Positions 801 to 57,680 of a stretch of 64,000 bases of DNA are shown in pieces. Made by a program: the position numbers and the translations under genes. The notes beneath the pieces were generated by a model that searched no databases, was not told where the DNA came from, and was given only the letters and a program-made list of their open reading frames with translations. Source of the DNA: Aplysia californica (taxonomy: Eukaryota); the NCBI RefSeq assembly GCF_000002075.1, contig NW_004797344.1, forward strand, positions 1-64,000. Reading direction: 5' to 3'. Each line of letters begins with the position of its first letter. The first letter of the stretch is position 1.

Positions 801-1439
801 CCTTGACATTATGTTGAACTATTAGGCAAAGAGAACGGTTACGCGTGAGTGCGTAACAACTGCTGGCTTATCTGTAGCGTGAAAATAGCTTTTGCTCGTT
901 GTAGAGTTCGGTATCGTCATTATATTAATGAATAAATGATCTTTAATTTACCCCGGTGAACTGGTTTGTCGGTTGAAAGTAGCGTTCCATGTAGGCCTAA
1001 TAATATAGATCTAGATAATCTAGTGCGCCATGTCGTCAGCTGTAAAATTCTTAGCAAGGGAAAAGGTGTAGAATCAAGGTCCAGTAAGCCTATTGGTTCG
1101 AGTTATAGAGTTGATTTAGATCTATGACACCAAAATAATAACAATTATAACTTAGTTTAGCGCAGGAGAAAATTGTTGGATACGCAGACAGAAGCAACAA
1201 CTAGGGAGCAAATGGAAAGATCTATACCACAGAACAGAAATATTTTAAACTGAATGTTCAAAAGGAAAAAAACCCAAAAAAACCCAACAGCCAGAATACT
1301 CTGAGCTCTACTTCAAAACAAGAGTTCTAGAATGCTCAAAAGACTGCAATTAAGTACAGTCTACTGCCCCGCATGTTATCACGTCATATTGCTTCTTATC
1401 AAGAAACCTGGCTTTTTTCAACGTAGCATATATTCAGTC

Positions 1440-1751
1440 ACGGTCACCAACTAGGAAGTGTTAAGGAAAACAAGAGAGATGAGGTAGGAAGAAGGCGGTT
1501 GAGATGGATTGGACATATTCTCAGGAGGTCAGGCAGCTGCGTTACAAAGAAAATGTTGGATTGGAATCCACAGGGTAAGAGATCAAGGGGAAGACCACAT
1601 GGAACCTGGAGAAGAATCACTGAAATTGATGTACTGAAAATTGGGAAGACATGGAATAAACATAAAGAGGCTAGCCCTGGGCAGAGAAAAGTGGAAAGTG
1701 TTAGTCCGTGGCCAAAACCCTGGTGCCGGGTGAGAAAGGCAATGATGATGT
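1440..1751 (+). mobile_element. RTE-clade LINE 3' fragment
   Basis: Translates RWIGHILRR..LDWNPQGKRSRGRP..TWRR, the RTE C-terminus, and ends in a (GAT)n tail. Confidence 0.85.
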
Positions 1752-4700
1752 ATTTGGTCAGGTACAGATCAGGACAACATACTTTACATTGAAAAGTAGT
1801 TAGTGAAAGACAAAGAGCAGGTGAGAATCTTCGCCAACCACATTCATTCAGGCAGGTGGTTTTAAAATGAAGTCGAGTACAAAGAACTATATTTAAAGTT
1901 TTATTTTCTATTGGATACCGAACACCACATAATTAGCTTTTAAAAAAAATGAACCATATATTTCTACTGATAAGACATAGTCACATACACATGTTCCGCG
2001 TCAGTAAACAGATTTGGACAATGAGAACAAAATAGAACCAGTCCAGTCACAACAGGGTGACCAAAAGAGTGTAATGTGTTATGTTCCTGTTCAGTTAACA
2101 ACACAAGTGAGTCTCCAACAATATAAGGCTCAGAGGCATCTGCTTGAACCGAAATCTGGGGGGCCGCCGGATTTTCTTTGGTTTAACCGGGATATCAGTT
2201 TAGAGAGATAGCTCAAATAAAAGAAAAAGAATTGAGGAGTTTATATTAAATTAATAATACTAATTAAANNNNNNNNNNNNNNNNNNNNNNNNNNNNNNNN
2301 NNNNNNNNNNNNNNNNNNNNNNNNNNNNNNNNNNNNNNNNNNNNNNNNNNNNNNNNNNNNNNNNNNNNNNNNNNNNNNNNNNNNNNNNNNNNNNNNNNNN
2401 NNNNNNNNNNNNNNNNNNNNNNNNNNNNNNNNNNNNNNNNNNNNNNNNNNNNNNNNNNNNNNNNNNNNNNNNNNNNNNNNNNNNNNNNNNNNNNNNNNNN
2501 NNNNNNNNNNNNNNNNNNNNNNNNNNNNNNNNNNNNNNNNNNNNNNNNNNNNNNNNNNNNNNNNNNNNNNNNNNNNNNNNNNNNNNNNNNNNNNNNNNNN
2601 NNNNNNNNNNNNNNNNNNNNNNNNNNNNNNNNNNNNNNNNNNNNNNNNNNNNNNNNNNNNNNNNNNNNNNNNNNNNNNNNNNNNNNNNNNNNNNNNNNNN
2701 NNNNNNNNNNNNNNNNNNNNNNNNNNNNNNNNNNNNNNNNNNNNNNNNNNNNNNNNNNNNNNNNNNNNNNNNNNNNNNNNNNNNNNNNNNNNNNNNNNNN
2801 NNNNNNNNNNNNNNNNNNNNNNNNNNNNNNNNNNNNNNNNNNNNNNNNNNNNNNNNNNNNNNNNNNNNNNNNNNGGGGGGGGTATTCCTTTTTTCCCCCA
2901 ACTACCCACTATAGAGGCGATTATGGGAATCACATCAAAGGGCACTTGAGTTCAAGCTTTCACATGCAGTGGCGAAGCGTCTACAAAATCAAATAATTAC
3001 TGTTTCCCTTCCTTGATGGGTAGGACTCAAGGAGGTTATGTAGTAAGATCTTTTGTAGGCTTACATCGTCACAGTCAAATTAACCCATAGACTGTGATAG
3101 AAAATGGCCTTATGAATACCGGTATCTAAATAGTAATAGGTGTCCAGGAAATCACCAATGAGCAGCGTGCACAACATTCGAAACCTAAGCCATCTTAGAA
3201 GAGCTTAGCTCGACACTGTTTCAGCATAAATACGCTGCTCACCCCTTTCAGGCCACTCTCATTTTAAGAAGTCACAAGCGCTGATTATGTAAGCTATACA
3301 ATTAAACTGGTGCAGTGTACTTCAAAAAGATGATGAGGGTGGGGACTTATTCCATGACTGCTGCTGTAAATACGTTGTACATGCACTTTTTTTCCCCTCG
3401 ACTTTTCAACGTCATTTAATCTGCCACTGCCTGATTATCGGCTCCGGTCGTGAAAGACTAGATATAAAAAGACATCCAAATTTGAAACAAACTGATAATA
3501 CATGTCGTGTAGTATTGTCTTCGCTATCTGCTTCTTTAACTTCTGTTTGTGCATTCATATATTTTAGTTGCATTTACTTTTTAAAAAATTTGAGACTATT
3601 AATCCCATCGCATGTTTAAAAGTTATGCTTACCTTTTAGTAATAAATATTAATCAATGAGATATTTTCTCGATTATGTTGGCGTGTCAATAATATACATG
3701 TACAACATAAATTGAAGATTTGCAATTCAGTAATGCTACCTCGAATATGAAGTTTTGTTGATTAATTATGTTCACATTGTGGGGAAAGCTTTTCCTGTGT
3801 GGACTTATCTGTACCAGGTTCTTTGTCTTACATTGATTATGACCAAGTCAGCCTTCGCCCCTGTACATATCTATAGGCCCTACTCAGATGTAGATCTATT
3901 CTTCTCTCTGGAACCAAGTTTAAGGGTTTTTGACTATCCTTTTCACACCAGAAGACATAGTAAACGCAAAGCGCACATAAGTATGTAGATGTGAACAACA
4001 TGATATGAAGACACCGGTTTACATGTTGAATTTTCTGCTTTCAACAATTTACGTACTCTTCCTTTTTTAAAAGAACAATTAAAACAAAAACACACTAAAA
4101 TACCTTTTAATGTTATTTGTAATGTTACAACGCGTGTGCAATTACACAACACAAGGCGTGTTCTCTGTTCAACCATAATCAAAGACTCTTCTTTATCGAA
4201 TTGGGCACGGGACGGCTGTTGTCATAAAATTTAGTTTTTTATAACCTACCATCAACCACAAGCNNNNNNNNNNNNNNNNNNNNNNNNNNNNNNNNNNNNN
4301 NNNNNNNNNNNNNNNNNNNNNNNNNNNNNNNNNNNNNNNNNNNNNNNNNNNNNNNNNNNNNNNNNNNNNNNNNNNNNNNNNNNNNNNNNNNNNNNNNNNN
4401 NNNNNNNNNNNNNNNNNNNNNNNNNNNNNNNNNNNNNNNNNNNNNNNNNNNNNNNNNNNNNNNNNNNNNNNNNNNNNNNNNNNNNNNNNNNNNNNNNNNN
4501 NNNNNNNNNNNNNNNNNNNNNNNNNNNNNNNNNNNNNNNNNNNNNNNNNNNNNNNNNNNNNNNNNNNNNNNNNNNNNNNNNNNNNNNNNNNNNNNNNNNN
4601 NNNNNNNNNNNNNNNNNNNNNNNNNNNNNNNNNNNNNNNNNNNNNNNNNNNNNNNNNNNNNNNNNNNNNNNNNNNNNNNNNNNNNNNNNNNNNNNNNNNN

Positions 4701-5632: not shown

Positions 5633-5635
<3 letters not shown>

Positions 5636-5708: not shown

Positions 5709-5712
<4 letters not shown>

Positions 5713-7018: not shown

Positions 7019-8324
7019 AGTTCAACAGATAGATGAGCAGCACCACATCCAATGGAATAAACGATCACATTGCTTGTATGTGCGTAGACAAAAGTGGCAC
7101 AACGTAGCTCTGTTATCACTGGAACTCAGTACATGCACCATGCTGGGCGACAGTGTGGATGGCTTTAGTTCGAATACTCAATAGGGCGTTCTTGGATTAG
7201 GGTCCTTTGGTGAGTTTTTAAACCATATTCCTGGAGAGCCCAGAAAACTTTGGGGAAAACAAACAAACAAACAAACAAAAACGTCAACTTAAGTCCAAGA
7301 ACGTCTCTTTCGGGGGTGGGGGGTGGGGGGTAAAATTGTAAAGGTTTAAGGCCCCTATCAACACTATTAGGTTATTTTTCTCTTTGGGTATTCGAATCAA
7401 ATAGAGTGTAACTGAACAATTAAAAACTTTCTCCGTTCTGTTTCATAATGGACCCTGCCGTTCCCTCACTCTATTTTTTTTTCTTAAAGTTTAACGGTAG
7501 AGTCATGATGACTCCATAGAGTAATTTTACATGGTTTTCAAAAAGTGATCGGTGTTTTCTCCTCTGCAGCCTCCGTTCGGTTTCGTGAGATTTGACTTTG
7601 AGGAATCTTCTGGAAACTGGAACGTTGAGATTTTTTAAAAAGCATACCCACTACCCACTAAGATTTAACTTATTTAGAGTTAGAGTCTCGAACTTCCGCA
7701 CGGTAGATCAAGTTTGTAACCTACTGGGCGACAGTTGTCAGCCATAAGAAATTAAGATTCCCGTGGGACTCTGGTAAATTAAATTGTCACAGACAGAGCT
7801 TCATCCGAAGTTCAGTTGGCTTTCTTGGTTTATTATTTCTGCTGATGCAGCACAAAACACAAACATGTCGTTTCGTTTGGTTTAGCAAGCGTTTTACTGC
7901 ACTTGCAACATAATTAGGTCATATAAGTGCCGAAGATTAGAACTGTAGCAAGAGAGTAACAAACATACACACACAAAAAAAGGAGGCTGATAGATGTTTA
8001 GATAGATAGAATAGGGACTAAACCGAAAAGGATCAGGGGATCTCGAGGAAGGGTGAACAGGTTTTTTTTAACATAGCCTATGAAATGACCTTTGCACCAT
8101 ACTTGTTATTATCACCAATTCAGCGCTTTTCCTTTTTGTGAGGGAGTACATCAATAAACATAGCGCTTACTACGAGTAACACCAGTGCGATTCTTAGTCT
8201 TACTCTTACACTTGCACCCCTTTCTGAAAATTGTGAATTACTTCAGAAAAAGTAAAAAGACGAAACATGTACAATTTCGTCATTTTTTTTCCAGTGTAGA
8301 TGTTTTACGCACCCATCAACACAC

Positions 8325-8520: not shown

Positions 8521-11500
8521 TACAAAACATCGGATATGTCGTCAATGTAGGACGTTTTAGTTTTTTTTAGTAAGGTTTTACGGCGTTCTAAACTGCATAA
8601 GGTCATATGAGCGCCAAGGGGTGGATGTCAACAGAAAAGTCCAAACGTGGAATCAGGCTTACTCTGCTCACCTCTCTAGCTTCAACAGCACAAAGTCTGC
8701 TTCGACTATCAAGGCACCCCGGAAATAGCAGTTCACAAGAGAGTAACTAACATGCCAAAGAAGTAAAGGAAAAATGACGATAGTAAGAACAATGAGGAAA
8801 GAAAAAGCAGCAGTTGCCCCCGAGTTGTTTCGGCATAGTATGACGTACCAAGGCATTGATAAGTCAGCCCATTTACAATTCTACTGTGTATACGAACATG
8901 TTAATATCCCCCCTTTGGGAATGGTCTAAAGACTCCTCAGTCAGTGGCACTGCCCGCGGGGGGGGGGGGGGGGGGGGGGGGGGGGGTAAATGGACAAAAT
9001 GTAGAGTCAAGCACAAAGGAAGAGCTTGGGGTGAAAATGGCTACAAATATGATTCATGATCCTGACCTGTACCGGAATATAAAACATAGAAGTTGAAAGT
9101 TTTATTTCCATAACTTCAAGGGGGGGGGGGGGATTACTTTTTTAAAGCTAGATAAATAGTTCAACGTGCAGACATTTTTTTTATAGAACAAAGATTGCTC
9201 CTAAAATACGAGCAAATCTGAGAAGAAAAAAAATCAACAAAAGACCGAACAATTTTGTGAATTAAAAAAAACTTGTGCATTTATTTCCATAAATTTTCCC
9301 CCAACAGCAACATAAAACAAGTAACAATTCAGTCCTGTAATGAAAAAAGACCACAAGTGCCAGCCAGGCCACGTTAACAACACATTTTTAGCACCATTAA
9401 ACACGGGTGGGGGAGGGGGCGAAGAGGGTGTGCTCATCCTTTCATCCCATGGGTCAATAACATTGTCTATTGAACTCTGGACACACAATACATGACATAT
9501 CCCTGAACGGAGTTGAGATTTGTACTTAGCAAACAATCATACAGATAAGACCTACAAATTCATAATATCTGTGCCGGCCTAAGAGTTGGTAAAAAGATCC
9601 TAAAATTCTCTAAATAACCAACTTGATACCATACATAGTAGGCCTCCCACTTTCTTGCAAAAAGTTGGTGGGGAGAGGATTTTTGGTTGTTTGTTTGTTT
9701 CGTTTTATAGCTTTTGGAACACATGGTCTTCCTACAAAACAAGACAACACATTGCCCACAAATTATGTATGTACAATTTTTACAAAATACCAATATCAAA
9801 ATATCTATAAAGCAATCACAGGTAAGAAGTTACAAGTTTCATAAAAGTTGATGAAACAAAAAAAAATATATATGTACAGAACACTAGCCACAAGCCCAGA
9901 CATAAAGTAGGCCTATAGGCCATTCTTGCAATAGATCTAACAGAAGTGTAACAACTGTAAGTGAATAAGAAACAATTGAGTAAAAAAAACAAACCAATAT
10001 TTTTTTTTGCTCAACTTGAAAGAAAAAACACTAAAATGTCAACAATGTCAAACTTGCTATAAGAAATTAACAGAAAACAAAAAATACTCCACAGAGATGT
10101 GTCACACTTCAGACATTGCCAGCCATACCATCTATGAAAACTGTTAACCATGTAGGCTACGATGCAAAGATCAAATTATACAGATGTGTCTGCTTGAACA
10201 AAGCAGAGAAAAGTCAAACTGATTGGAGCACACTTCAGAACAGCCCTTGTAACGCTTTCAAACAATAAAATGGATGAAAGCTACACAAATAGGCAGACAA
10301 AAAAGTGTAATTCCGAAATACTCAGACTTACATGGTTAGCAATTTTCAGATGATAGGACATAATCAATTCTTCCCTTGCATACAAAATGCAACACAAGCA
10401 ATTCTTCTTGATGCTCATTCTCTTTGCACTTATTTGTTCACAAACTGCAGAAAACAGCAAGACAATCAGGCAAAATCATTCTAGCAACAAAAAAAGTGTG
10501 ATGCTTTAAATAACCAGCAGAAAATACATTTTGAAGAAAAAAAACCCCCCATCTACAATACAGAAATTCCATTGCACAACCAGAAACCAAACTAGTATGC
10601 TAATATTTTTTAGTTTAATAGGTTTTCAAGGACACCATCTCTTTGAAGTTCAATGTATGTAAATTGTAAAATGGTATCGTATTTCAGATGTGCTTTCACT
10701 TAGGCAGACTTGAATTCACTCAGTGCATAAAGCGAACGTTTCTCCATGTTTGTTTTAGCTAAGATACTCAAGGAAAGACAAAGGCCCTACCCCGATGCTT
10801 AAAGCAAAATACCTTCCATGTATATCTACATCTGCTCTGTATAAATGTTTTGGATATAAAAATTACAATTTATAGGCTCATCACTGCTGTACTGGTATTA
10901 TCATACAGTTTACTACAATTCACACTCCATTTTAATATCAGAAAGTACACCTTCCAGGCCAGTCGATGATGGCAAACACAAATTAGAAGTTTTCAGGTCT
11001 TTCGGAAAAGTAAATCCATCTGACACAAGCAAATTAACTCTTACTTCAGTCATACGGTACATGTTTCAAGAAAACTCGTGTTATTTCAGTCATAGGGTTC
11101 GAGGTTCAAGAAAACCTATGCTCTTATAGGCAGGACACATTTGGTCTATCCAGAGTCAGGGCATCAGGTTGAGAGGACTGAATAAAAGTCATTGGAACCC
11201 CGCTATGATTCAAACCTTAAATTAGAAATGGGCAGATCAAATTCAGAACATAATTTGCCACAGTGGCTTAAAAATTAAAGCTTACAAATAAATAAAATGC
11301 GTGAGAGCTGTACCTAAAACTAAGATTTCAGCACTACCTCTGTTTCACTAATATGAAGTATGCAACATGGATGGCGGCTGGTGCCTCTATAAACTATAAA
11401 TAAATCATTGATGGTCAAGGTCAAGGGCGAAGTAAGCACAGTTCAACATTACATAGTGTAGAGACGAAATACGGTCAACAGATTTGACTGGAGGTAAATG

Positions 11501-12389: not shown

Positions 12390-12897
12390 AATTATTCATA
12401 TATATATATATATATAGGGGGAGTATTTCAAATTGTATTTCTTGACCCAAATAAATATGATCATATACATCCACAACAAAGTGGAAGCTATAAACCAACC
12501 ATATGTAATACTGAGAAATTATGAAAATCCACCATGCATGGCAAATATTAAGACTCTCCATAAATAGCAGAAGTTACACCAAGCTGGAATGTCCTTCTAT
12601 TGTACCGGTACATCTGTCATTATACACGTACACTGTACTGACTTTCTCCTCCCATACATATATCTTGAGTGAAATGATGACCTTTATGAACAATACTGCA
12701 CAGAAAGTATTGACCAAAAAGCTGACGAGACAATTACGTCTACAAACACACTCTCAGATTATTAATTTCATTTCAATCCTTTGAACCCTTGATCCTGACT
12801 GTTCTCAAATCACCAAACTCTATGTACTTGATCAAGACTCAAAGTGCACGGGACTTACAGGATACCCACAAATACTCAATGGGCTGATTAAACAGCC

Positions 12898-13075
12898 CAG
12901 GCTTGCCAACTTTCCAAAAACCTAATTGGGGCACCCAAGTTTATAACATCAGATTACATTACAAAATTACATTGAATACCGGTAGTTTTGGTGTGGTAAG
13001 CTGAAATGCCATCTCAAATTCCCCAATGTCGAATTTGGGACAGTTCTGGGAAATTTTGGACAGTTGGCAAGCCCG
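12898..13075. mobile_element. hAT-like MITE
   Basis: Inverted ends GGGCTTGCCAACT / AGTTGGCAAGCCC. Confidence 0.55.
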
Positions 13076-15239
13076 TCAGCTTAAAACACAAAGAAATACA
13101 TCTGAGCAGATTCATCAGTCATGTGGGTTCAAAAGGTTAAATTCTCAGTACTTGAATACATACGAGCTATGAAAATAATACAACCACTGCAGACCCTCTC
13201 ATCATCTGAACAAATTGAACCTCACATCACATATATAATAATAATACTAATAAGTTCTACCGTTAGGCCCAACATGAAAATACTCTGACAAATAGTGGTA
13301 AGTAGAGATCATACAAACATGTACACTGCGGCATTTGAGGTTTGAGAGTTTTTGTTCACTCTGTTGCAAATATACAATAAATAAAACAAAGAGTATCCCA
13401 ATGCATACTCAACTAAAAAAATTCTTTTCTGATCTGCTCACTGTGTACCACCCAAGTATTATGTACCTATGACAAGCTCATTTACATGAATTATGATCAG
13501 CATGCTTTTATCGTAAATCGACAACGAATACATTCAAGAGAAATTTCTCAAATCTTGCTTGCTTGTGTAGGTTCTGAACAAAAGCATTGACCTGTGAATC
13601 ACTATAACTATTTAAGTTTTCCTCATCCAGCACCACCGAAAAGTAAGAACATCGACAAAAATAATCACGCAAAATTTTTTAATAAAAATTAGGTCCTTTC
13701 AGAAAAAAGGATCCAATATTGTCAATCACCAGCACTTTTATTTAATTACCAAATACTAATAAAACTCTTTGCTGCCAGATGCAGTTGAGACAAACGTTTT
13801 AAACAGATGTAAATGACTGTCCATTTGGCAGTACATTTTCTCCCTCACCACCTGAGAGTAACAAAATAAATTTTCAACACGCTATCCATGTCACTCAAAC
13901 TGAAGCTTATACAACACGAAAATAATTCATCCCAGTTGAAAGAAACATGGTTCTGTGCTAAAACAAAGTTCTGAGTACTTAATTAGATTACACTGTATAA
14001 CCATACACCAAGAACTTAAAAAGAAATTCATCCATTCAAAATTTAAAATCATACAATCCAACAACACCCACAACTGTGCACTGCATTTTATAAGCGTGAA
14101 AAAATGTCCTGGGCAATTCTTTCCCTCTAAAATAGTGACGTCTGATTACAGAATACTAAATATATAACTTTCAACCGATTTGAAGAGACCCAAAACTGTT
14201 AATACCGGTACAGTAAGGACAAAAACATTTAAAACGACTGATCCTCCCTGGCAAAGTCTGAAAGATAACAAAAAGTCATCTGTGCTAATGATTATCGATG
14301 TCTGCCCATGGAATATCACATTACAAAGATAGCCTTGTTCAAGCTGACTGAAAAAAATGCTTGTCATACCCACCTGGTTATGGTGAACTCTTGTATTACA
14401 AAAAGTAGGCTACTAGTATGTCATAATTTGCTCTGAAGTTCTCAATTTAGTGTAAAAGAAATTAAAGATGCTTTAAGTCCCTCAGTACAGTCAGAAAAAC
14501 ATTTAAATGTTCAATGTACATGTACTGTCTTTCATGATTGAGTTCTGCTATTGTTATGAGATCAGGACCATCGAAAAAGGCTAAAACTACTTAGCTTTAA
14601 AAGCCAAATACAATACTTTTGTTAACACAACTAATCTCTCAAAAATCAGAGCAGTTTCAATTATCTAAATCATGAATACACATGAAGTAACTGCTAGTAT
14701 CTTCTTTCATTTTTCATATACGACAAAAAAATCTTACATGGCAGTCTTAAACAGTTACTATTCATATCTAAACATGTTATTAACTTTTTTCATTATAAAA
14801 TAAATAACACATAAAATCAAATCTCTTACATAAAAGTCACCCACAGGAGACACAACAAAAACCCCTCACAAAACCTAAACAACGTTTTAAAAACATGAGA
14901 AGTCCCAGATCATCCAGTGCTAGTAGAATAAGAAGGTCGACAAACAGACCTAACTGAACCAGTAACAACTTCTTTCAGAAATTAGAAAAGAAAGATACCC
15001 GAATTTCAATGCAAACATTAATCTCGGAATAGAAAAGATTTGTCAGTTTTCTTATATTCCGAAATTTCAGGAAGGCTTTTTACAAGGTATATGTAAGACA
15101 TGCTAACTACAAGTGTCTTGAAATTCTTTTTTCTTTTTCAGAAAGAAGTTTGAAAGGACGGAGGGAGAGAAACAACTTTTGAGACTGGAAACAACAAAAT
15201 TTTTAAGACATCAAGTAAAAATGACAGGAACATTGCTAA

Positions 15240-15425: not shown

Positions 15426-18400
15426 ACTGGTACACTTCAAATGGAATTGGTCTTGACAACAGTGACATTATAATTATAGAAGGAGAAGAAGAAAGGTCCA
15501 TGACAGAACAGGCATCTTTGGAGAAGAATTTTTGATGGCCTATGTGCTCTGTAGCAAGTAAAAAGTCAGAGAGAGACAGAGAGTGAAAAGCGGGGAGAAG
15601 CAGACAGACAGACTAGTTTTAGTTAAGTTTAAGTAAGAATATTGCCATACTTGCAACACAAATATGTTATTTTAGTGCTAGAGATTAGAGGTGTTACTTT
15701 TACTAGAGAGTAACATACGAAATAAAGAATGAGGATACAAGGACGATAGATGTTTGATAGGAAACAAGGAGCAAACCATACCAGAGCACGCGCCAACCAC
15801 CCACACACAAACAGATAAATGGAGATGGACAGTAAAAGACAGTCATAATGAATAAATTTATCAGATATATATTATGCTGAGGGTGATAAGAACTTTATAT
15901 ATCTCCTTTCACCCTGTCAGACCCTCCTCACCAGTCTACAACAGACACCCTATCATGTCCAAAGTATAACAGAGTGATGCAAACTTTTCTCCATCCCCTC
16001 TGCTGGGGCCAGAAGTATGACTTTACCGAGGCCAGAGTTCAGACTTGTAACACACACCTTCAACTTGCGCGGTTACAAGGATGCCTTGCTCAATCATTCT
16101 CTTATGATACAAAGGGAGTGTGCAATAATGTTGCTTCACTCGGCCACTTTGGATATGTGATGTGAAGAGGAAACTTGGAAAGACTTGGAACAACAGAGAT
16201 CTGATAAAGAGGGAACAGCAAAAAACTAACTCATCCGTTAATTGGTAATGCCGTAACTTCATGAAAAAAAGCTTTGAACACAATTCCTCCACAGCATCTG
16301 CTAGTTTAAACACCAAAAGCCATACAAAGTTTTGAAAAATTAGCAGTCTTAAAACTTCACTTGATACCTGTGAAGTGTCCTACTGAGCAGGAGGAGCATT
16401 GGTGTAGGGTCAGTAACACAATCAGGAAATAAGAATCGACAACATAAACAAAAACAACAACATCAACAACTTCAGCAACACAACAGCTATTTCTGGAAGA
16501 CTTAGGGCCACCCGCTGACAGGGAGCGGAGAATGTGATCAGGTAAAAGCCTGGAGGGAAGCCATTCGGCAGATGAGAAGTTTTTGCTCAACTAGGAGATG
16601 AGAAGCATCTCACTTGGAACCTGGAACGTTAATTTTCACACTAGAAACATATATTATTCTAGTGAAAAAAATCAAACAGTTTATAGTCATAAAGTAGTGG
16701 TTCATGCAACTTCATATAAACAAAAATGGTCTTCACATGAGCTTAAATATATAAAAAAAGCACCCACAACACATTGCAGTATACAGAATCATTAATAGAT
16801 CTCAAAGAACAAGACCAAGATTTACTGTCACTGGTTCTAAAAGAGAATGTGCATTGGTATTGGTGGAACTATGTGACAACACAATAACATAAAAGTATGG
16901 CTCCTTATGAACATTAGTCAAAAGAAATCAAATAAGCACAATGGAAGAAACCCCCACATTGTACAATATCCAAGTCTCCTATGTGGTAGGTTCACAGAGT
17001 AATTCTTTCTTAAGCATCAGGTACATATGGATTCAATTTCACACACCTGAAACAAATTGTGCTAATGGGACTTCTTTTTGTCAATTTCTTCTTCAATGAT
17101 ACATATCCATGAACAACATGAGAGAAACGCATTATCACTTCAATAAAACATAAATGAGACTGTGTCAAAGACATTGGCAAGCGCTTCATGATCATTTGAT
17201 CGAGCATGGATGTGTTAATTTCAGACACTGAATTTGCAAATATCACAAGAATCAAAGAACAATAAAAACACACTAGAGTGCTGAACTTGAGTATCATAAA
17301 GAGACTAGCATGCTTCAAACAAGTTATTATGAACTAGACAAGCCCAGACAAACAATCTTTTGATGTCAGGACGACCTTGATATTTTATTTAAGATACAAA
17401 AATGAAACGACATTCTGATATTCCACATACTCAAACAAAGTCCAAAAGTAGTCCTGCTTTGCATCAAGTAAGAGGGATGCTGAAACCGAAAAATGGAGAG
17501 ACATATTGAAAGGAACAATTGGATCTGGGCTTACTTCACCCACCAAAAAGGAAAAAACCATAAAATGGGATATCAATATCAGGATTATCTAAATTATTTC
17601 CTTTGAATATTTTTTCACGTAGGAGTGGTGTGTTTTGGAGTTGCTTTTTAGAAACTCATCAGTTACAAGCTATACAACTTGTCTCATTGCATCTAAGAAT
17701 GAGAAAAAAGAACGTTTTGAATACTGCCTAACTCACTTACAAGCTCTAAAAGCAAGCCAGGAGCTTCTGGCCTAGTTAAGTAAAAAGTAAAAATCATCTA
17801 GAAGAAAAGGATTAAAAGACAAAGAAAAAAATGGGTACTTCAGTATTGTAAGCCCTACAGAATGCCAGTTTTCATTTTTATATCATAAACTGAAAAATCG
17901 ACCATCAAAGCAATTCAAGTGGGCAGAAAAACTATAGAGCACCATGAAGCATACAGTTACAGCATTTGATATTGTTAAAAAAAAGCCTGAGAAAGTTTTG
18001 CCTGCCCCCTCAATCACACAGATGTGAGATGAGCTGAGATGAAATAATACATTAGAACTCAAGCGTGGTAAAGTCTTATGTTTAACAGCAAACCAAGTGA
18101 AGGTCTGCTCAATTGGGAAGAAAATAGAGAACTCAACAAATTTATTTTATCAAAAGATCAAACTGAAATCCTTCAGTTTGCTTTTAGCCATGCATAAATT
18201 ACTTATGTCCCAAACTCCTTACTTCCTACCGCTGTACCGCTGGCAGCAGCTTGGGCACATTTCTTTACGACGACTTCAACGTCAAATTAGTTTTCGACGA
18301 TTGCCAAAAACAGGTCTTTTTTATCAGGAGTTCATTCATTAGATGAAGTACTATCAAAGTAGGTTCACTTGTTTTGATTTAATTACCAGTATAGTGATAT

Positions 18401-19057: not shown

Positions 19058-19261
19058 CTGTGAAGACAAATAGCAGATTGTTGAACTTGAACTCGGGTTA
19101 TTCTCAGTCAAGACTTTTCAGTCTCTATTAACCCACTGAACTAAATTTTTAACTCAATACCTACACAGAAATGCAGAATACAGAGTTCTACTGTTCAGTT
19201 GTACATATTTTACAGCCTCATTGATAAAATATAGATCAATGACAAGAACGGATGTTTTTTT

Positions 19262-19432
19262 AGTAGAGGTTTTACGGCGCTCGCAACTGCATAAGGTCAT
19301 ATGAGCGTTCGAAGATTAGAGGTGTTACAAGAGAGTAACGAACATAAAAAAGAAGAAGGGGAGATAAGGACGATAGATGTTTGATAGGAAAGAAGAAGCA
19401 AACCACACCAGAGCACCCGCCAACCACCCACC
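19262..19432 (-). mobile_element. Dispersed retroposon 3'-tail repeat (LINE/SINE end)
   Basis: Near-identical copies at ~7893-7963, 8572-8615, 15683-15802, 22425-22465 and (inverted) 62622-62790. All are variably truncated at one end, and most retain a GGCGCTC..GAGCGCC stem followed by GTAAAAC. Confidence 0.7.
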
Positions 19433-31595: not shown

Positions 31596-32594
31596 TTTTA
31601 GACTTTCCATACAATTCAATAAATTTCTTCAGAATTAGTTTCACTTTCAAATGAATTCATCGGATGAGGCCCATGTTTGTGACTAAAAAATCTCAGGCAT
31701 TTCTAAAGAGGGTGGCAGCCTGACACACCCTTGACTGTGCGGGGTCGGCAGTAGACGTGTACGTTTCCTTCGCAGCTGACAATGATCCCAGTAACCCAGT
31801 CGAACAACACATCACAAACGGAAAAGGAAAGTTGTTTTACGACATGTTCCTCTTTGCAGCTACCGCAAACAAAATCCGTTGGGAGGTCTTATTGAATTTT
31901 ACTTGAACAAGGGCAAAGGTTAGTCTCTATGAACTTTGACCGTGCGTTGAAAGTCGAAATTGTCTGATGTTATTGCCCGGCAGCCCGGTAGCCAAGATCA
32001 GTCAACTATCAAGCAGTTGTGTTACAGTTTCTGTGCATTCACGGCAATTTTCTTTCGCTTCATTTCTTTATATCACGATTGATTGACGAGGCAGTTGATG
32101 GTATTGGTATCAGATAAAACAACTTAGCCTAGATTATATGTTTTCTTTTTAGACTTCGTTCAAAGTCTAAATAGATTCTATTAATTTCCTTTTATTAGCC
32201 TACTTTCATCTCTCATGTAATCACTTGATTCGTTGTTGTAAAAGTGGCAACACGACAGGCATGAGAATCTTCTTTCCACATTACAGTACGCTGTAGTGTA
32301 GTAGTAGGGCCAACCATTTGAGCCATTTCAGATCAGACCAGGTATAATAAGTCAGACTTATTGTGAGTGTGCCCTTAGCTTATAGTAGACTCAGGATGAT
32401 CTTAATTATTTTAAGTAGATCTAATTATCTGTCAGTGTTGCTGTAGTAGTGTAGTGTAACTAGGCGAATCACGCGCTGAGCGAAAAAATAACAATTATTG
32501 AAAGATAGAAGAACAGGAGCCTATAAAAAGCTACATTATATCCTCAGTCTCCGTCAAAAATACAATAGCAACTTTTAGTGAATCACTGACAATC
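31596..32594. promoter_or_regulatory. Putative bidirectional promoter/5'UTRs between ENTPD and PEX11
   Basis: Divergent start codons 1.0 kb apart. CpG-richer core and two DR1-like sites. Confidence 0.65.
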
Positions 32595-32671: not shown

Positions 32672-32788
32672 GTAAACTCTTCTTCTTGTGCTCTTTGTTA
32701 CCTTTCTTTGACTTTGACAACTTGTACCAGTGAATATATGAAGAGAGATCAACAGAGTGGTATCTGTAAAGTAGGTCACTACGTAGTA

Positions 32789-35672
32789 CAGCAGTCTCCG
32801 CCTAAACACACGCCATACTAAAAAACGCTTTGCTCAAACGCATGCTTTGGTCTGTCAGCATATAATAGGTTTTTTGAGAGTGCTATATAATTTAGATGTA
32901 CAAATGCACGTTCACTTCTAAACGCATCATGCTTCAATACGTGAAACACGCCGACAGGTAAAGCTTGACAAGGAGAAATTTTCACAACAACCTATACAGC
33001 TCTTGCATAAGACAGGTCTATACCGGATATTTGGCGAGACTGCCCCTCACGCAGAACAAAGAGAATATAATGGACAGAGTTAGTTTTCACACCCAACTTT
33101 CCACAGACCCAAATCTTGGACTGGTCGGGTGATGTTGGAAGGGGGGGGGGGAGACGACAACTGAAATGCCTTTTGATTAGTCACTCGAAATGGGTCTTTC
33201 AGAGAATGTTTTTATGACTATGTGTTTCTGTGACTGATATGTTTACTTATTAGGCTTATGATGCGCAACATGCGTGAATGCTGTAGTAGAACACTAGAGA
33301 GGCTTGTTGATGATTGAAGTTTTTGTCAAGTAATCAGCTGCTTTCGAAGACCGTATCGTTCTACGAATTACAAGAGAAAAGTCTCTCAGAATGTCTGATT
33401 TTGATGTCATCCATGTATAGAGCATTGCATAAGTGGATATGCGCTATATAAATGCAATCCATTATTATTATACATATGTATAGTTGAAATAGATGAAAGG
33501 CAGTCGGGAGTGGCCATGGAAGTTGGAAAGCCGTGTGGCTGAGCACTTTTCCCTCTAGCACTATCACCACCAGTGTCCATTTATCTGTTCCCGACATTTT
33601 ATAAGTGCATTATATGTAGTACAGTTAGTCCGTCTTTCTGCTCCCCCACCCATTCAACGCCTTTGTATTTCTTTCCTTTATAATTCATAACCGCAGTCGG
33701 GGAATCCATATAAAAACAGTCACGTGTTGCCACTTAATCAACCAAAGTGACCCGCTCCCCGAAGGGAGGTCAGTAAAATACCCACTAAATTAAAAGTAGG
33801 AGAGTCTGCGATCTGCGAATGTGGACACGGCCAAGAGGATGTCAACCTTATCCTTCAGCGCTGCCTGCGCTACACCACCTTTCGTACACAGGCGTGGCAG
33901 AATGTGACTCCTCTTGAGAGAAAGCTCTATGGCAGTCTCTCAGATTTGAAGTGGACTGCACAGTTTGTGCGCGACCTTGGACTGACTGTCTAGCTGCTGT
34001 CATCAAGAATGAGGAAGAAACTAAAATATCAAGGAAATGAGATGAGTGCATCCTTTCCTCCCTTTGCGCAGGTCATGGCAACGCACACTCCGTAACACCC
34101 GCTAAGGAGCCTTCCTGAGCACTCTGTGCGTTTAAGCGGAGACTTTTGTACAGACTACATGCTAAATTTTTAGTTTTAGATTAGGAAAGAATTCCGTAAT
34201 TGACCACTTTGAAATAAAGTGTTAGGGTCAGGGTTAACACTGAAGGCTAGGGTTGGTTTGGGTTAGGATCTAGATCTCTTCTTTATTGTGTTTGTTAGGG
34301 GTGGCTGATGGTTGCTCATTACGGAAGTCCTTCCTCACTTACATGTTGAACTTGCTGTCCATAGTGGTCACCTGTACCAACCAGCCGCTGTACCATGAAA
34401 CCCTTGCGTTTTTCTTATATTTTTCACCTATCCATGGTGTTCATTATCATAGTGGCTCCTGTCCAATATGACCTTGAGACAATTAGGTCTCAAAACCTGC
34501 TCCTAGTCGTAGCAGTCGCTTGATACAATAAGTTTTCTGCCTATTCATCCTCAGGCTTAGCGTGTAGCTTATTCAATCAATCAATGCACAAAGGCGTTAG
34601 ATTTAGCAGTCGGTTGCCTAATTAGACCAGGTTTGTAAAAATACTACAATCTCTCAAAGGAAAAGATTTCTTTGTGCAAAAAAAATATTAGCCTTCACCT
34701 AAACGCACAGTGGCACAGTGCTCGGGAGGGCTCCTTGGCCTGTGCTTACATGAACCTGTACAAAGGGAGGAAGGGACGCAACCATATCATTTCCTTGATA
34801 TTTTAGTGAGGGTCATTTTGGCTGATAATGTGATGAAACGTGTCTGTTTTGTGAAGGATTCCCCGACTGTGTTTATGAATTATGAATACAAAGGCGTTGA
34901 ATGAAGGAGGGGAAAAGCAGAAAGACGGACTCAGTGTATTGAATATATACGCTAATTAATGTCAGGAACTGACAAGAGGAAACTACTATTGGTAATAGTC
35001 ATAGAAGTAAAAGCGCTCAGCCATGTGGCTTTCCAAGTGAACACTCCCGACTGCCTGTCATCTATTGCAGCTGGGTAAATGCATTGATGGCTGCAGAGTC
35101 AGACACTCCGAGAGACTTTTCTCTTGTGATTCGTTGAACAAGAACATTGTTCTTCAAGTGCAACTGATTGCTTCTCAAATCTCTAAAATCCTACAGAGGC
35201 CTATCTAGTGTTCTACAGCATTCTCATACATGTTGCACATCACATTACGTATGCTGTCACTCAAACACCAGTCAGAAACCTTCTCTCAAAGATGCATTTC
35301 GAATGACATATCAAAAGATATTTCAGTCTCCCCCCTCAACATTCACTTGACCTGTCCTAGACCTATTGTCTGAGGAAAGTTAGGTGTGAAAACGCTCTCC
35401 ATCACTCTCTTTGTTCTGTGTGAAGGGGAATTCTCACCAAATATCTGGTTGTCCGGTCTTGTCTTAGGCAAGCTGTGTAGGCTGTAGCGCACATTTCCCC
35501 ATGTCAAGCTTTACCTGTTGGTGTGTTTCGCGGATCCAAGCGTGCGTGAAGAAGTGACCGTGCGTTTGTACACATCTGAATTGTAAAATAGCAAAAATCC
35601 TGTCAAATGACGAAAGTGTGCATTTGAGCAGAGGGTGCTTTTGTATGGCATCTGTTTATACAGAGACTACTG
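32789..35672. mobile_element. Foldback-type TA-flanked DNA element with ~1-kb diverged inverted arms
   Basis: TA|CAGCAGTCTCCGCCTAAACA..TGTTTATACAGAGACTACTG|TA. 32789-34170 is colinear with the reverse complement of 34680-35672. Confidence 0.8.
33790..34019 (+). mobile_element. 3' fragment of an I/Ingi/Nimb-like LINE nested in the foldback arm
   Basis: Decayed C-terminal zinc knuckle (SAICECGHGQEDV..ILQRCL), GAA-rich tail, flanked by ACTAAA. Absent from the opposite arm. Confidence 0.6.
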
Positions 35673-51273: not shown

Positions 51274-53942
51274 ATAGCTTGTACTCATTAAAATAGACTA
51301 TAAATGGTGAAAACCACTTTAGATACTCTATCGTTGAGTCCAAGTGTTGATAACAAGCATTAAAAATCATGTTATTAAGCTTTCAAAGCTTGTATATATA
51401 GATCCTTTTTATCCATGCTTCTCGGGGGAATCTTTGTTCAAGCATGGACAGGGTGAGGGACTTCTTGCATAATTATACACACATCGATTCCTAATCCTAT
51501 GCAAAGAAACAAATGTGATAATAATTGGAAGTGACAGGATGTCAAAATACTGTCCGAATCTATGAGAAAAAAAAAAATGTGAACGAACATGTAAATAAAT
51601 CTGGCGTCACTTTCGCACCCAGTCAGGGCCTCAAATATAGGCGAACAAGCTGAAACAGTACATTCCTGGGGTCATCCAATCACAGGGGGCTTCCTGTAGC
51701 AAGTTTCGGTTTACCTTTGGGGGCAAGGCAGATAGAAGATATAAAGCTTTAAAGTTGACACACCTATTTTCGTCCAAATTTTGACCAAATGGTAATATAT
51801 TACTCTAAGTCTAGAGGCTACTGAGAACCCTTCGAAATTGAGAGGATTGCTCGTTTCCACCCCAGTTGTACAAGAAAGTTGACAGGATGCCCGCCATTCT
51901 TTCGATATCCTACAGTTGGTAAGATTGTACTTTACCGGACCACCGGTCGGAACTACTTTCGCTATGGCGCCCTTGGGGTCTAGTGGCCTGCTATTCTTCC
52001 TTTCCAAGCTCCCCTACTCACCCTGCTACTCAGTTTTCTACTTCCTCATCCTTCGACTGCCAGCAACCAACCGATGTCTCTTACCGGATTTTTCAGTCAT
52101 CACGACCATGCCACGTGCCCTTTGACCCACGACCCTGACACCTAGAGGCTAATTGGTCAATCTAATAACGTGGTCCACTATTCTTATTTGCTCGCGACCC
52201 TGCGAGGCTAGGCCTACTCCTGATCCGGTAAAGTACAAAGGAGGGCGAGAGATGCGCACGAGAGCTCATTTGCATAATTGCAACCCCCTCTGCCCTGCTC
52301 TTTACTTGGCGAGTGCTGCAAAGCAAGGCTCGGCCTGTTCCAACTCTAATTTTAATTAGTTCTACCCCGATCGTCCACTTACACATGGTCCGCTCATATT
52401 ATTGTTTATGTGTGTTTTTTAACATAATTATTATTGTTGCCAGGGGGCTAGCCCCTCAGAAACCCCCCAGTTGTTATATTGATATGTCCAATTGACCGCT
52501 CATGTTATCGTTTTATGGCATGTGTGTCCCCTGAAGCCCCCCCCCCCCCCCCCCCCCAACCCTCTCTCTCTCCCTCTCTCTTTCTGTCTGTCTATCCCCT
52601 TTCTCTTTCCTTCTCTCTCTGTTTTTCTCCCCCCCCCCTCTCTTTATTTTCTCTGTCTGTCTGTCTGCCAGTCCCCCCCCCCCCTTCCCTCTTTCTCACT
52701 CTCTTTTTCTCTCTCCCCCCCCCCCCACAACCTTCTCTCCCCTTCTCTCTCTCCCCCCCCAACCTTCTCTCTCTCTCTCTCTCTCTCTCGTGTGCGTGTG
52801 CGTATTATGTCTTTGGCCCAGAACGAGATATTCATTCTTTCATTCAAACTATTTGCAAGCGTATTTCATATCAAGTATGCATTTTTATACAGTAAAGAGA
52901 TAAGGAAAGTTGATAGCACGGTTATCTTTTAAAAAATATTTCTTGCAACTACGAGACAAGAACTGAAAACGAAAGCTCTCAATATTATTGCCAGGTCTCG
53001 TTATCTGAGAAACTCATTATTGGTCAATGTTCCCTTTACTCAACTTTACTGTCTTATTTTGTTCTGCACTAAAACTGCGCTTGTGTTTATATATACAGAC
53101 AGACAGACAGACAGACAGACAGAGAGATTTTAGATCAGTTCCTACACTCAATTCATTCTTTTGTTTCAGCCTCATAATCGTCTCTTTCAATGACATTTGC
53201 TGATGCTGATGCTAGCGTCTAATCAACGAGATGAGAGTGCTATTTCGGCACTACCCCAGTCTCAACAGTTATCGAGCTCAGAAAATGTTTTTTGAACACC
53301 TTTTCAAAATACTTTGATGCCCTAGACTCAATTTCTCAAGATTACCCCAGCCTACTGCAATGGCATCCACATTCTTCAGCTCATCACACGACAGTTCGAA
53401 CATTGATAGGCACTAGTGGTGTAGGCATAGTGATGGAAAATATCGTGAGAGTGATAATAGTGAAGAGGAACCTTTAGATGAGGATGAACTTGCTCCTCAC
53501 CCCATTGCCAAAAAGAAAATTTCACCAATGAAGAAAGATAAAGAAGTAGATCTAGGTGACAATGACGGGTATGCGTTTTTTATTCAGCCTTTGAGAACCC
53601 ACCATCAAATAAAGTTTCAGCAAAACCACGTATTGCAACATTTAAAACCATTTATAATAACCTAATGATAGATTTTTTAGAAATGTGTGCATTTTCTAGA
53701 TCTAATCTAGATCTTATATATGACATTCCAACATGGCAGGCGTTACCTTAGCAACACAAAAGAATTTTCAAAATTTTACTTCATGACTTAATTATCCACT
53801 CTTTTTATATTGATGCTAACCAATAATGCTACCACATTTGTAAGCTTAGTTTCTTGTTCTTAACGAATTTCAAAATTTCCCCCTCATCATGCCTTAAACC
53901 GGCAGTGGACGCTCCGTCTAGTTTAGTCTAAACTAAGCTTGA

Positions 53943-54192
53943 GTGCCGTGAACGTAGCCTCAACAGAGCCTGCAAACTGCATTCAGGGCGCCGTGAACGT
54001 AGCCTGCCAACTAGAATCTACATTCACGGCGCCGTGAACCTAGCCTGCAGATTACGTTCACGGCGCCGTGAACGTAGCCACTGCGTTTCTTATTTTCCTT
54101 TTGGCGCCGTGAACGTAGCCTGCCAGTGCCAACTAGAATCTACATTCACGGCGCCGTGAACCTAGCCTGCATTCCGTGAACGTAGCCACTAC
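53943..54192. repeat. Tandem array of (CG)GCGCCGTGAACGTAGCC with palindromic TTCACGGCGCCGTGAA cores
   Basis: About 7 units with a higher-order duplication. Confidence 0.85.
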
Positions 54193-54303
54193 TCAAGTCT
54201 ACTGCGTTTCTTATTTTCCTTTTCGGGCTTTGATTTAGATCTAGGCATCGGGAGCTCAGCTAAAAACTTGAGGGGGCTGTCTATACCGCATCAAATTTCT
54301 TAC

Positions 54304-54400: not shown

Positions 54401-55599
54401 GTTGTTTTTCAATACTACTCCAAAACAAGAATTCTCTAGGTCTATTTGCCTTGCTAAGAAAACAAAATAAGTAATTTTTTTTAACAGTCTTTCTGACTTT
54501 TCTGTAATGTGTTTTGCTGCTTCATACATATGACTACTATGATATTAAAAATTTGAAAAGCTTAAATACCTTAAACAACTGTAATTTTCACCCACAGAGG
54601 CATCGCCGTTCATTTAGTTCGAAACTAAATATTTTGCTAGATTCCAGATGGCACACGAAAAGTAGCACCGACAAGAAAAAACGAATAGAACGTTTTCCAA
54701 ATGTCACTGAATCAACCGGACACAGAATTTTAGCCTTGTGATCGTGAATGGGTTTTGTAATCTTGACGTCTTTATATCTGTATTCCTTTATATAATTTAC
54801 ATATTGCAATTTCGAAGCCTTCCCGTACACTCATGTGTCTCAGTTATGCAAAACTAAAAGGTGATCCACGACATTATAATGAAATGAATGGTGGTGTAGC
54901 TGGTTTGGCCTCGTTTGTATTGTTGTTGAGTTCGGTCCGTTTTGGGGTGCTGACACAAACTCAAAATCCACATTACAGATTAGAATTTAGAATCTAGATT
55001 TCTAGATCTAGTTTTAGTCTATTTCCTATGATTTGTTGTGTATAGGCAGGTGGGGGTGGGCGGGCATAGTTTTACTGTTGTGATACTGCATGTCATGTCG
55101 TAAGAGACGACTAAACTAAAGAAAGGCGGGCACTTTTTCGGCAGTTCCCACCCCGCAGTTCTTATTCACCGGTTTTGGCCCCAAGAGTAGGCGGTTTGCC
55201 CCCTTTCCCCAATAAAAATATGGTGGAGGGGGGGGGGGGTTCAGGGGGCATGCCCCCCTGAATTTTGCCATAATCTTTGCAGTTGTTCGGTTTGATATCT
55301 TAGCTCGCCGCACATCAAATGATAGATCTAGGCTCAATACTCAAATAAGGGGGGTGGGAACTACCGAAAAAGCACTGACTTAAACAGGCCTTCAAAAGGT
55401 GGGTTTGAACAGTTTGATCTCCCGAAAAAGCCAGATTGCAGAGGGCCAACTACCCAACCCAGTAAAAACAGTCAGTTACAGAAAAACACAGCATTTATTT
55501 TACGATCTTGGGAGATGATGGAGGAGCTTCTGCATTCATAGGAACAGTGAAGGAAAGCGGACAGAGCCTAAAGGACTCTCCTTACCTGAAATCTTCTCG

Positions 55600-57680
55600 T
55601 GTTGAACAAGTCTCTCCGGATTACGTTGTGGGATTTTCACACCATGTATGAAGCAGGAAAAAGTTCTCAAGTATCACAAGAGATGAAGAGATACAGGCTG
55701 CACATACTAGGAGTCAGCGAAACACTGGATACAGTCTGGACAGAAGCAGCTCAGCTCGGGGGAACTAATTATATATAATTGTATTCTGGGAGGGAAGACA
55801 CCATGCGGAAGGGGTGGGAATCGTTTTGAGTAAGTATGCACAGAAGTTACTTAGAGGATGGGAACCACACAGGGAGAGGATCATAATGGCTTCATTCACT
55901 ACAAAGAACAGGAGCCTCAACATGAATATATAGTCCAGATCTAAGCCCCAACAAATGATACTTCGGATGAAGACAAAGATGCTTTTTACAGCCAGTTCCA
56001 GGGGTCATTGACAAACTACCAAGGAAGGATGTTAACATCATAATGGGAGATGCCAATGCCAAGGTTGGTCAGGACAACATAGGTTATGAGTGAATTATGG
56101 GACAAATGAATGCGAATGGTGAGCGATTTGCAAATCTGTGCTTTCAACAGTTTTGTTATTGAAGGCTGTTTTTCCCCACAAGAGGATTCACAAGGCTACT
56201 TGGGATTCGCCAGATGGAGTGACAGAGAACCAGTTAGATCATTTTTGTATCTCTCGTAGGTTCAGGCGTTCTCCGGAAGATGTCATAGTAGTTCAGAGAG
56301 AGGCAGACATAGGATCGGATAATCCTCTGCTGTTGGCAAAACTCAAGCTTTGACTCAAAAGCAGCACTGGAACCAAAAGAACGAAGTTCCAAATAAGTCT
56401 CTTGGACGGACACAAGAAAGAGGAGTTTCAGCGGCAGCTGAGGTACAGATTTCAGCCTCTAGCCGATCTAAGTGGAGAGGACATGGAGGTGGAGATATGC
56501 TGAACCAAGGTCAAAGAGGTCTTTACATCAACATGTCAAGAAGTAGGCCTACTTGGTGCGAAGAAATGGGAGCTCAAGGAATGGGTTAGCCAACACTCAT
56601 TGGATTTAATTAGGTTTAGAAGACAACTGAAGGCAGAAGGGAATGCAAATAGAAGAAAAGGATCACATTGAAGAAGTACATGTCAAGAAATCACTAAGAA
56701 ACAACAAGGGGGAATTCATGAACAGGCTGGTAGAGACAGCAGCGGTAGGAGGGCACATGCGAATCCTTTACTAGACCACAAAGACTCTTGCTGTAAAATA
56801 TGGGAAACCTGAAGTACCGGAAAAGGACCAAGAGGAGAAAACTATTTTTGGAAAGGAAGCTCTGTCAAAACGATGGGCAGAGCATTTCAACAGTCTCCTG
56901 AACGGACCACCACCGAGTAACCCACAAAACATCTTTCCAGCAAGAAATGAGTTATCAATCTGCTGTGACGGTCCTTCAAAACAAGAGATTCTGGATGCCA
57001 TTAAGAAGCTGAACAAAGGTAAAGCGGCCGGTCGTGTTCAGATTCGACCAGAGGCCCTAAAAGCAGATGTCAATGTGACGGTAGACCTCCTCCCATTGTT
57101 TACCAGGATCTGGAATGAGAGCAAGTTCCGGAAGGATTGGAAAGAAGGACACCTCGTGAAGCTTCCAAAAAGGGAGATCTCTGCAACTGCAGCAAGTACA
57201 GAGGGATCACTCTTCTCCCAATACCAGGTAAGGTCTTCAACAGAATCATTCTGGAGAGAATCAAGACTGCAACAGATTCAAGACCACTGGATAAACAGGT
57301 TGGTTTCCGGAAAAACCGCTCATCACCGACCAGATTGTCGCGCTGAGGATCATTGTGGAACAGTCCCTGGAGTGGTCTCAGTTGATCGTCAGTTTTCATG
57401 ACTATGAGAAGGCCTTTGACAGTACAGACTGAGCAACGCTATGGAGGATAATGAGACATCACGGAATCCCACAGAAGTTGGCGAACGTCATCATGAGCAT
57501 GTACGAAGGGACAAGTTGCAGGGTTGTACATGATGGCCAGCTCACTGACAGGTGTGAGACAGTGTCGTTTACTATCACCTTTTCTCTTCATTTTGGCAGT
57601 CGATTGGCTGATGAAGGAAACCACCAGAGGACACAGAAATGGCATACAGTGGACCCCATTGACACACTTGGACGATTTGG
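55600..57680 (+). mobile_element. Decayed RTE LINE (APE endonuclease plus 5' part of RT)
   Basis: TMYEAGK..EMKRYRLHILGVSE, MGDANAKVG, HKATWDSPDGVTENQLDH, GSD, WKEGHLVKLPK, DYEKAFDS. Many frameshifts and stops. Confidence 0.92.

Follow-up and report, generated by a model that had tools for sequence, protein, structure and literature searches.

Excision of Tc1/mariner transposons leaves a short footprint in which the first or last 2 to 4 bases of the element lie between two TA dinucleotides, and the canonical footprint of Sleeping Beauty is TAC(A/T)GTA, a complementary pair of 7-mers with one central base (PMC6943129). In rice, a genome-wide comparison recognized 94 excisions, mostly deletions with filler DNA, and exactly two copies of the target site duplication were left in only 8 of the 94 (PMC4423477). 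Here, we analyze a 64,000-nucleotide stretch of the Aplysia californica genome (NW_004797344.1, positions 1 to 64,000; "the window"), which is the start of contig 74 in an assembly of 927 Mb and 4,332 contigs. Scattered along it are four palindromic 8-mers of the form TA-xy-y'x'-TA, namely, TAGATCTA (GA type), TAGGCCTA (GG type), TACCGGTA (CC type), and TACATGTA (CA type). These words are derived insertions of 6 bases (+6), with related forms of 5 bases (+5), at single ancestral TAs. They are probably the repair scars of TA-targeting cut-and-paste transposons of the Tc1/mariner superfamily that inserted and were later excised.

The window holds 32 copies of TAGATCTA, 16 of them dispersed and 16 inside an array at 31.3-31.5 kb, together with 8 of TAGGCCTA, 5 of TACCGGTA, and 6 of TACATGTA; every position given in the initial annotation of this DNA is exact. 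The dispersed words, 35 in all, occur as single units, and their flanks are unrelated. The nearest assembly gap is at least 243 bases from every word, so the results are independent of continuity across stretches of N. The words, chains, and array are located as follows.

992 to 999: TAGGCCTA, 14 bases from the TAGATCTA at 1006
1006 to 1013: TAGATCTA
1117 to 1124: TAGATCTA
3117 to 3124: TACCGGTA, nearest gap edge at 243 bases
3695 to 3702: TACATGTA
3891 to 3898: TAGATCTA
9908 to 9915: TAGGCCTA, followed by a partial second unit, TAGGCC
9932 to 9939: TAGATCTA
12603 to 12610: TACCGGTA
12977 to 12984: TACCGGTA
14203 to 14215: chain of TACCGGTA and TACAGTA, reading TACCGGTACAGTA; +6 and +5 scars with a common TA
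14517 to 14524: TACATGTA
30072 to 30079: TAGATCTA
30396 to 30403: TAGATCTA
31280 to 31536: degenerate (TAGATC)n array with 16 TAGATCTA; 5- and 7-base units and TAGGCTA-like units interspersed
32416 to 32423: TAGATCTA
40420 to 40427: TACATGTA, also in contigs from three other individuals
41084 to 41091: TAGGCCTA, also in contigs from three other individuals
41537 to 41544: TAGATCTA, also in contigs from three other individuals
42207 to 42214: TAGGCCTA, no paralog by exact-anchor search
43032 to 43045: chain of TACCGGTA and TACATGTA with a common TA, reading TACCGGTACATGTA
43423 to 43435: chain of TAGGCTA (+5 form) and TACATGTA, reading TAGGCTACATGTA
43823 to 43830: TAGGCCTA, also in two other individuals
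45223 to 45230: TAGATCTA
49427 to 49434: TAGATCTA
50668 to 50732: three word types in 65 bases, TAGGCCTA at 50668, TAGATCTA at 50699, and TACATGTA at 50725
52209 to 52216: TAGGCCTA
53547 to 53554: TAGATCTA
53697 to 53716: TAGATCTA heading an 18-base TAGATC-like insertion at the TA of a repeat
54236 to 54243: TAGATCTA
55003 to 55010: TAGATCTA
55323 to 55330: TAGATCTA
56544 to 56551: TAGGCCTA in a dead long interspersed nuclear element (LINE), a +6 insertion at TA

The window counts of all four words were reached in none of 100 dinucleotide-preserving shuffles (means of 1.04 for TAGATCTA, 0.49 for TAGGCCTA, 0.40 for TACCGGTA, and 1.31 for TACATGTA). Markov models of orders 0 to 3 predict about 0.9-1.9, 0.5-0.8, 0.3-0.8, and 1.2-1.9 copies, respectively; the order-0 value for TAGATCTA, 1.88, agrees with the figure of about 2 per window that had been estimated initially. 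Among the 16 TA-xy-y'x'-TA words, an excess in the window is limited to these four and the trivial TATATATA. The excess is confined to 4 of the 16 also in an independent sample of twenty random 10-kb pieces of the genome (176 kb without N), where the observed and expected counts are 21 and 1.6 for TAGATCTA, 24 and 3.4 for TACATGTA, 11 and 0.95 for TAGGCCTA, and 4 and 0.45 for TACCGGTA. After simple dinucleotide repeats, the four words are the most overrepresented palindromic 8-mers of that sample. The TA flanks are coupled as well: TA flanks both sides of 16 of the 170 GATC cores that are not part of the array, where the half-site frequency predicts 4.3. The genome-wide count against a Markov background that the initial annotation had proposed puts all four words in excess, with expectations that are rough, being scaled up from the 176-kb sample.

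TAGATCTA: 177,062 sites, about 8,500 expected
TACATGTA: 69,449 sites, about 18,000 expected
TAGGCCTA: 52,570 sites, about 5,000 expected
TACCGGTA: 8,620 sites, about 2,400 expected

Together, the four words have about 300,000 copies in the genome, and the excess of about 270,000 sites corresponds to some 0.5% of all TA dinucleotides. Their density in the window is about 1.7 times the genome average.

That the 8-mers are +6 insertions at ancestral TAs, as first proposed from the window alone, is borne out by copies of a LINE, of a second repeat, and of a short interspersed nuclear element (SINE) and by sample paralogs. Apart from the window, the genome has just two matches to the anchors around the TAGGCCTA at 56544, and both read GTCAAGAAG-TA-CTTGGTGCG; they are on contigs outside the scored LINE matches and are assumed to be copies of the same LINE. 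This LINE has at least 367 first-look candidate matches, of which 40 were scored, and the 39 other scored copies are about 80% identical. The dead copy, at 55600-56800, carries an endonuclease-like fragment of an open reading frame with an LGVSET motif. At 53697, the anchors enclose an unbroken TA run in 20 of the 22 other repeat copies (TATA to TATATATATATATATA; TATATA in 14), while one has a different GA-type insertion, TAGATATCTA, and one is on a contig absent from the scored matches. The family covers 53620-54089 and has at least 2,210 candidates in the genome; part of it is overlapped by a 41-bp tandem repeat of 4.7 copies with a CACGGCGCCGTG palindrome, at 53980-54170. Alignments of sample paralogs have about 35 independent 6-base gaps, of which 2 are an exact +6 at TA, with TAGATCTA in one and TACATGTA in the other; the all-against-all BLAST of the 264 kb of window and sample covered just 5 motif instances. 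Exact-anchor searches with the flanks of the words at 43428 and 42207 found no paralog.

The words at 40420, 41084, 41537, 42207, and 43823 are present without a gap in contigs from other individuals and studies; these scars are therefore real and shared rather than assembly artifacts. One individual's contig is 6 letters shorter somewhere in 43296-43793, and the contigs of two runs are 5 letters shorter somewhere in 42746-43322; each interval holds a chain. No resolved polymorphism between element and scar appears in the contigs of other individuals over the window.

The SINE, an abundant element of about 175 bp with at least two subfamilies, served as a mutation trap. Its copies in the window lie at 19258-19431, 62623-62791, 15682-15804, and 7891-8005, and the one at 19.2 kb shows a AACGGATGTTT target duplication. 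At each of several chosen dinucleotides, copies that carry precisely 6 additional bases were retrieved from the genome, and the four words were counted among these events.

ACGA-TA-GATG: 86 +6 events; TAGATCTA 15, TACATGTA 3, TAGGCCTA 2, TACCGGTA 1
GAGAG-TA-ACAAAC: first 100 of 207 +6 events; TAGATCTA 1, TACATGTA 8, TAGGCCTA 1, TACCGGTA 1
GTGT-TA-CAAG: first 100 of 181 +6 events; TAGATCTA 1, TACATGTA 4, TAGGCCTA 0, TACCGGTA 0
GTTTGA-TA-GGAAAG: first 100 of 111 +6 events; all four words 0
ACC-AC-ACC (non-TA control): 26 +6 events; all four words 0, none motif-like

All four types thus recur independently at the same TA, at two hot SINE sites. At ACGA-TA-GATG, the four words make up 21 of the 86 events, next to several one-base variants of them and to 6,314 exact unmodified copies of the 26-base core segment. 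Here TAGATCTA is found on at least three subfamily backgrounds and must have arisen more than once. The words favor some TA sites and are missing from others. Site preference also differs by type, with TAGATCTA at ACGA-TA-GATG and TACATGTA at GAGAG-TA-ACAAAC, which argues for separate agents.

Other insertions accompany the four words in the SINE. At GTGT-TA-CAAG, tandem duplications predominate, and there are also one TAGGCC variant and two TACTCGTA (C22:1115798 and C89:1426357), a word that we take to have the form of the footprint of the Minos element. The 10-base TA-bounded palindrome TACACGTGTA occurs once at ACGA-TA-GATG (C437:313822). Both words hint at further TA-targeting families. 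Some 15 copies (e.g., C94:593784 and C112:524975) have a +4 variant, TAGATCTATG, where the consensus has TAGATG; it makes TAGATCTA by extending the existing TAGA and reflects a single inherited event or else another outcome of repair.

At GAGAG-TA-ACAAAC, we also examined SINE copies that depart from the consensus right after the TA, for 100 of the 119 such junctions. Those that return to the consensus after the insert give the following product spectrum.

CA type: +6 TACATGTA, 7 rows; +5 TACAGTA/TACTGTA, 3 rows
GA type: +6 TAGATCTA, 5 rows; +5 TAGACTA/TAGTCTA, 2 rows
CC type: +6 TACCGGTA, 4 rows; +5 TACCGTA/TACGGTA, 10 rows
GG type: +6 TAGGCCTA, 2 rows; +5 TAGGCTA, 4 rows

Among CC- and GG-type products, +5 forms are more frequent than +6 forms, which marks the +5 forms as primary products rather than the decay of +6 words. 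The same +5 7-mers are enriched in the 264 kb. Forms lengthened by a further central base are in excess too, among them TAGAATCTA (12 observed, 1.4 expected), which is also present at the SINE site. A spectrum like this, with both complementary forms that have a single central base, is expected when short 3' overhangs are joined.

Words of different types are also joined to one another. The three chains quoted initially, at 43032, 14203, and 43423, are present as written. Genome-wide, the mixed chain TAGATCTAGGCCTA has 2,502 copies, against 4 of its reversed control and about 50 expected even given the count of TAGATCTA, and the 14-mer TACCGGTACATGTA has 94, against 9. About 5% of TAGGCCTA words are fused to TAGATCTA via a common TA. 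Mixed chains of this kind are not products of slippage of a single repeat unit. Words of different types also lie less than 100 bases apart more often than random TA placement predicts (12 pairs versus 3.9; P of about 0.001). An extreme hot spot was seen at C1:199000-215000, a 15-kb region with about 40 TAGATCTA, about 10 TAGGCCTA, and three fused chains. (TAGATC)n arrays are common in the genome, with 20-mers at 7,478 sites. In the window, the 31280-31536 array has the three or more head-to-tail units of a hexanucleotide microsatellite, and the dispersed words do not. The hot SINE TA carries TAGATCTAGATCTA twice and a 34-base TAGATC-like array, so one TA is enough to start an array like that at 31280-31536.

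Excision might give rise to these forms as follows. Insertion would duplicate the target TA. On excision, the nontransferred strand would be cut a few bases inside each end, leaving on each flank a short 3' overhang of the element's first bases, and end joining would yield TA, terminal bases, and TA. With a 3-base overhang of the form x-y-y' (GAT, CAT, GGC, or CCG), self-annealing of 2 bases would produce the exact palindrome TA-x-y-y'-x'-TA without loss. GGC and CCG overhangs could also anneal over 3 bases with a central mismatch and produce both +5 forms, which would explain the high +5 share of the GG and CC types at the SINE site. With a different stagger, plain 2-base overhangs (GA, CA, GG, and CC) joined without pairing would give identical +6 words. 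The initial suggestion of two terminal bases from each end thus fits the words, but 3-base overhangs fit them equally. The TAs of existing scars are hit again, creating mixed chains, and (TAGATC)n arrays may begin as scars and then grow via further hits, slippage, or both.

Candidate parent elements were sought with scans for TA-flanked terminal inverted repeats (TIRs) using exact seeds and 2- and 3-base starts, by clustering of the sequence that follows half-words, and by tests of candidate termini. The CA-ended MITEs (miniature inverted-repeat transposable elements) mentioned in the initial annotation are indeed present in the window, TA flanked and starting with CAGT, but the scans of the window found no CC-ended TA-flanked TIR element to match the CC-ended MITEs also mentioned there. 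The elements are as follows.

44178 to 44346: 169-bp TA-flanked MITE with a 23-base TIR starting with CAGT
44383 to 44561: 179-bp TA-flanked MITE with a TIR starting with CAGTGCAGCC
48927 to 49704: 778-bp element flanked by TA, with CAGT...ACTG ends and TIRs matching at 13 of 16 bases
57647 to 58875: weaker TA-flanked CAGT...ACTG element
62489 to 62923: 435-bp TA-flanked CAGT-ended MITE holding a SINE copy

One further TA-flanked CAGT...ACTG element occurs in the random sample. For the CA type, these ends fit both TACATGTA and TACAGTA/TACTGTA. The two different CAGT-ended MITEs at 44178-44561 are just 36 bases apart, a spacing that suggests a local insertion hot spot. Several apparent GA, GG, and CC parents were rejected because they belonged to large inverted repeats or consisted of two of the words. 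Nested inverted-repeat pairs at 32700-35600 (e.g., 32901/35568, 33289/35213, 33492/35062, and 33622/34936) point to one large inverted repeat centered near 34.25 kb.

Transposase domains are abundant in the genome. We found at least 1,159 first-look candidates for DDE_3 (PF13358) and at least 1,217 for the mariner-type domain (PF01359); 150 of each were scored, and all 150 in both sets are above the family cutoff. Several candidates lie in stop-free open frames of 288 to 420 amino acids. Mariner-type matches in stop-free frames of 383 amino acids (C52:1810463, C666:341251, C198:92486, and C46:723182; 382 at C604:339710) look like a young, possibly active family. A YSPDLSP transposase-motif match at 55.9 kb was discarded, as it lies within the LINE endonuclease region; regular expressions otherwise gave nothing usable on the 264 kb.

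The reading in the initial annotation, excision scars of at least four TA-targeting families, is supported in part: by the derived insertions, the recurrence at the same TA, the +5 variants, the chains, and the CAGT-ended MITEs of the window, but not by parents of the GA, GG, and CC types, none of which was found in the 264 kb. We still favor excision scars, with the GA, GG, and CC types presumably of transposon origin too and each type probably reflecting a family with its own termini. Several observations weigh against this. No TA-flanked TIR element starting with GA, GG, or CC (or GAT, GAC, GGC, or CCG) was found in the 264 kb, including elements of the form TA|GA..TC|TA or TA|GG..CC|TA, although TAGATCTA is the commonest word; hence, three of the four types have no parent there, rather than the single missing family first supposed. 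Among the 100 of 119 nonnative junctions at the hot SINE TA, none holds a resident element; longer insertions there show no TIR remnants, and no single site was seen in all three states (element, scar, and empty). At GTTTGA-TA-GGAAAG, in the same SINE, none of the four words appears in the first 100 of 111 events. At ACGA-TA-GATG, the inserted TAGATC resembles the adjoining TAGATG, and a single SINE master may have passed on some of the TAGATCTA copies. TACCGGTA reaches only some 3.6 times its Markov expectation genome-wide and is rarer than its own reversed control, although such controls are poor, for this word because it has a CpG and its control does not and for TAGATCTA and TACATGTA because theirs arise in the same arrays in another phase. 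Finally, the excision products catalogued in rice are messy and not uniform footprints (PMC4423477).

Some of these points would suit a TA-specific insertion process independent of resident families, in which a domesticated transposase or another nuclease cuts TA and repair adds short self-complementary filler, the CAGT MITEs then explaining at most TACATGTA. The absence of GA-, GG-, and CC-ended parents from the 264 kb, the lack of a resident element among the examined junctions at the hot SINE TA, the strong site preference with renewed hits on earlier scars, and the 34-base array grown at one TA all agree with it. Yet the inserts are fixed words that do not copy the flanking sequence, which calls for a fixed source, for instance the ends of elements. 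The pairing of +5 forms agrees with annealed overhangs derived from elements, the preferred TAs differ by type as they would with separate agents, and each transposase domain has more than 1,000 candidate matches in the genome. We consider such a process unlikely. Much less likely still is that the words are decayed or nascent (TAGATC)n hexamers, a quirk of composition, or a selected protein-binding palindrome. The commonness of the arrays, the presence of tandem pairs, and the G that frequently follows dispersed TAGATCTA speak for a repeat-based origin, but four unrelated cores have the TA frame in common and the other twelve words of this form are not in excess; slippage of one unit cannot make mixed chains such as TAGATCTAGGCCTA; and Markov models up to order 3 fail to predict the counts. 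Single words are clean +6 or +5 insertions within copies of the SINE, the LINE, and other repeats, and these empty-site comparisons largely refute word bias, microsatellite debris, and binding sites alike. Illumina adapter junctions contain GATCTAGATC-like sequence with GATCT/AGATC, which could make the words a sequencing or assembly artifact; with five window sites gap free in contigs of other individuals and studies, adapter context lacking around the words, and three other cores behaving alike, we give this practically no credence.

If the words are excision scars, they would form a countable fossil record of about 300,000 cut-and-paste events, a number several times that of the resident elements of the only type with a known parent, and would expose an excision history that is normally invisible. 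Sequence alone would suffice to measure how whole transposon families choose targets and how their excisions are repaired, the termini of elements still to be found would be predictable (TA|GAT, TA|GGC, and TA|CCG), and the birth of TA-bounded palindromic hexamer repeats would be accounted for. For annotation, it matters that +5 and +6 insertions disrupt reading frames in repeats, as they might in genes. It is conceivable, if rather doubtful, that the GA, GG, and CC scars (about 230,000 sites) were made by agents that have no multicopy element, perhaps a handful of low-copy transposons of extreme mobility or a TA-cutting transposase that has been domesticated, and that in this lineage they are a major unrecognized source of small insertions, and of microsatellites with self-complementary hexamer units, near genes.

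In a limited, nonexhaustive literature search, the four 8-mers gave incidental matches only, with no prior report. Within that search, the structure is known from Tc1/mariner footprints, and we did not find the genome-dominating accumulation, the four-type spectrum, the mixed chains, or the seeding of hexamer arrays described. As in Tc1/mariner footprints (PMC6943129), the scars lie at TA with a TA on each side, their inserts are short and, taken together, palindromic, and both complementary +5 forms occur; TACAGTA and TACTGTA, the Sleeping Beauty forms themselves, are found at the SINE site, and CAGT-ended TA-flanked MITEs are present. The scale differs, with about 300,000 words near 0.5% of TA sites dominating the palindromic 8-mer spectrum, and so do the four types, three of them without an element in the 264 kb, the predominance of +6 palindromes over +5 forms for the GA and CA types, and the mixed chains and arrays. 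The rice catalogue (PMC4423477) likewise recognized excisions by comparing filled and empty copies and included Mariner-type elements, but the products here are uniform and extremely numerous. Finally, the 31.3-31.5 kb array and thousands more resemble hexanucleotide microsatellites in being tandem TAGATC units. Unlike those, the unit here is self-complementary and TA bounded, single units arise as TA insertions inside repeats, and the arrays include units of other scar types.

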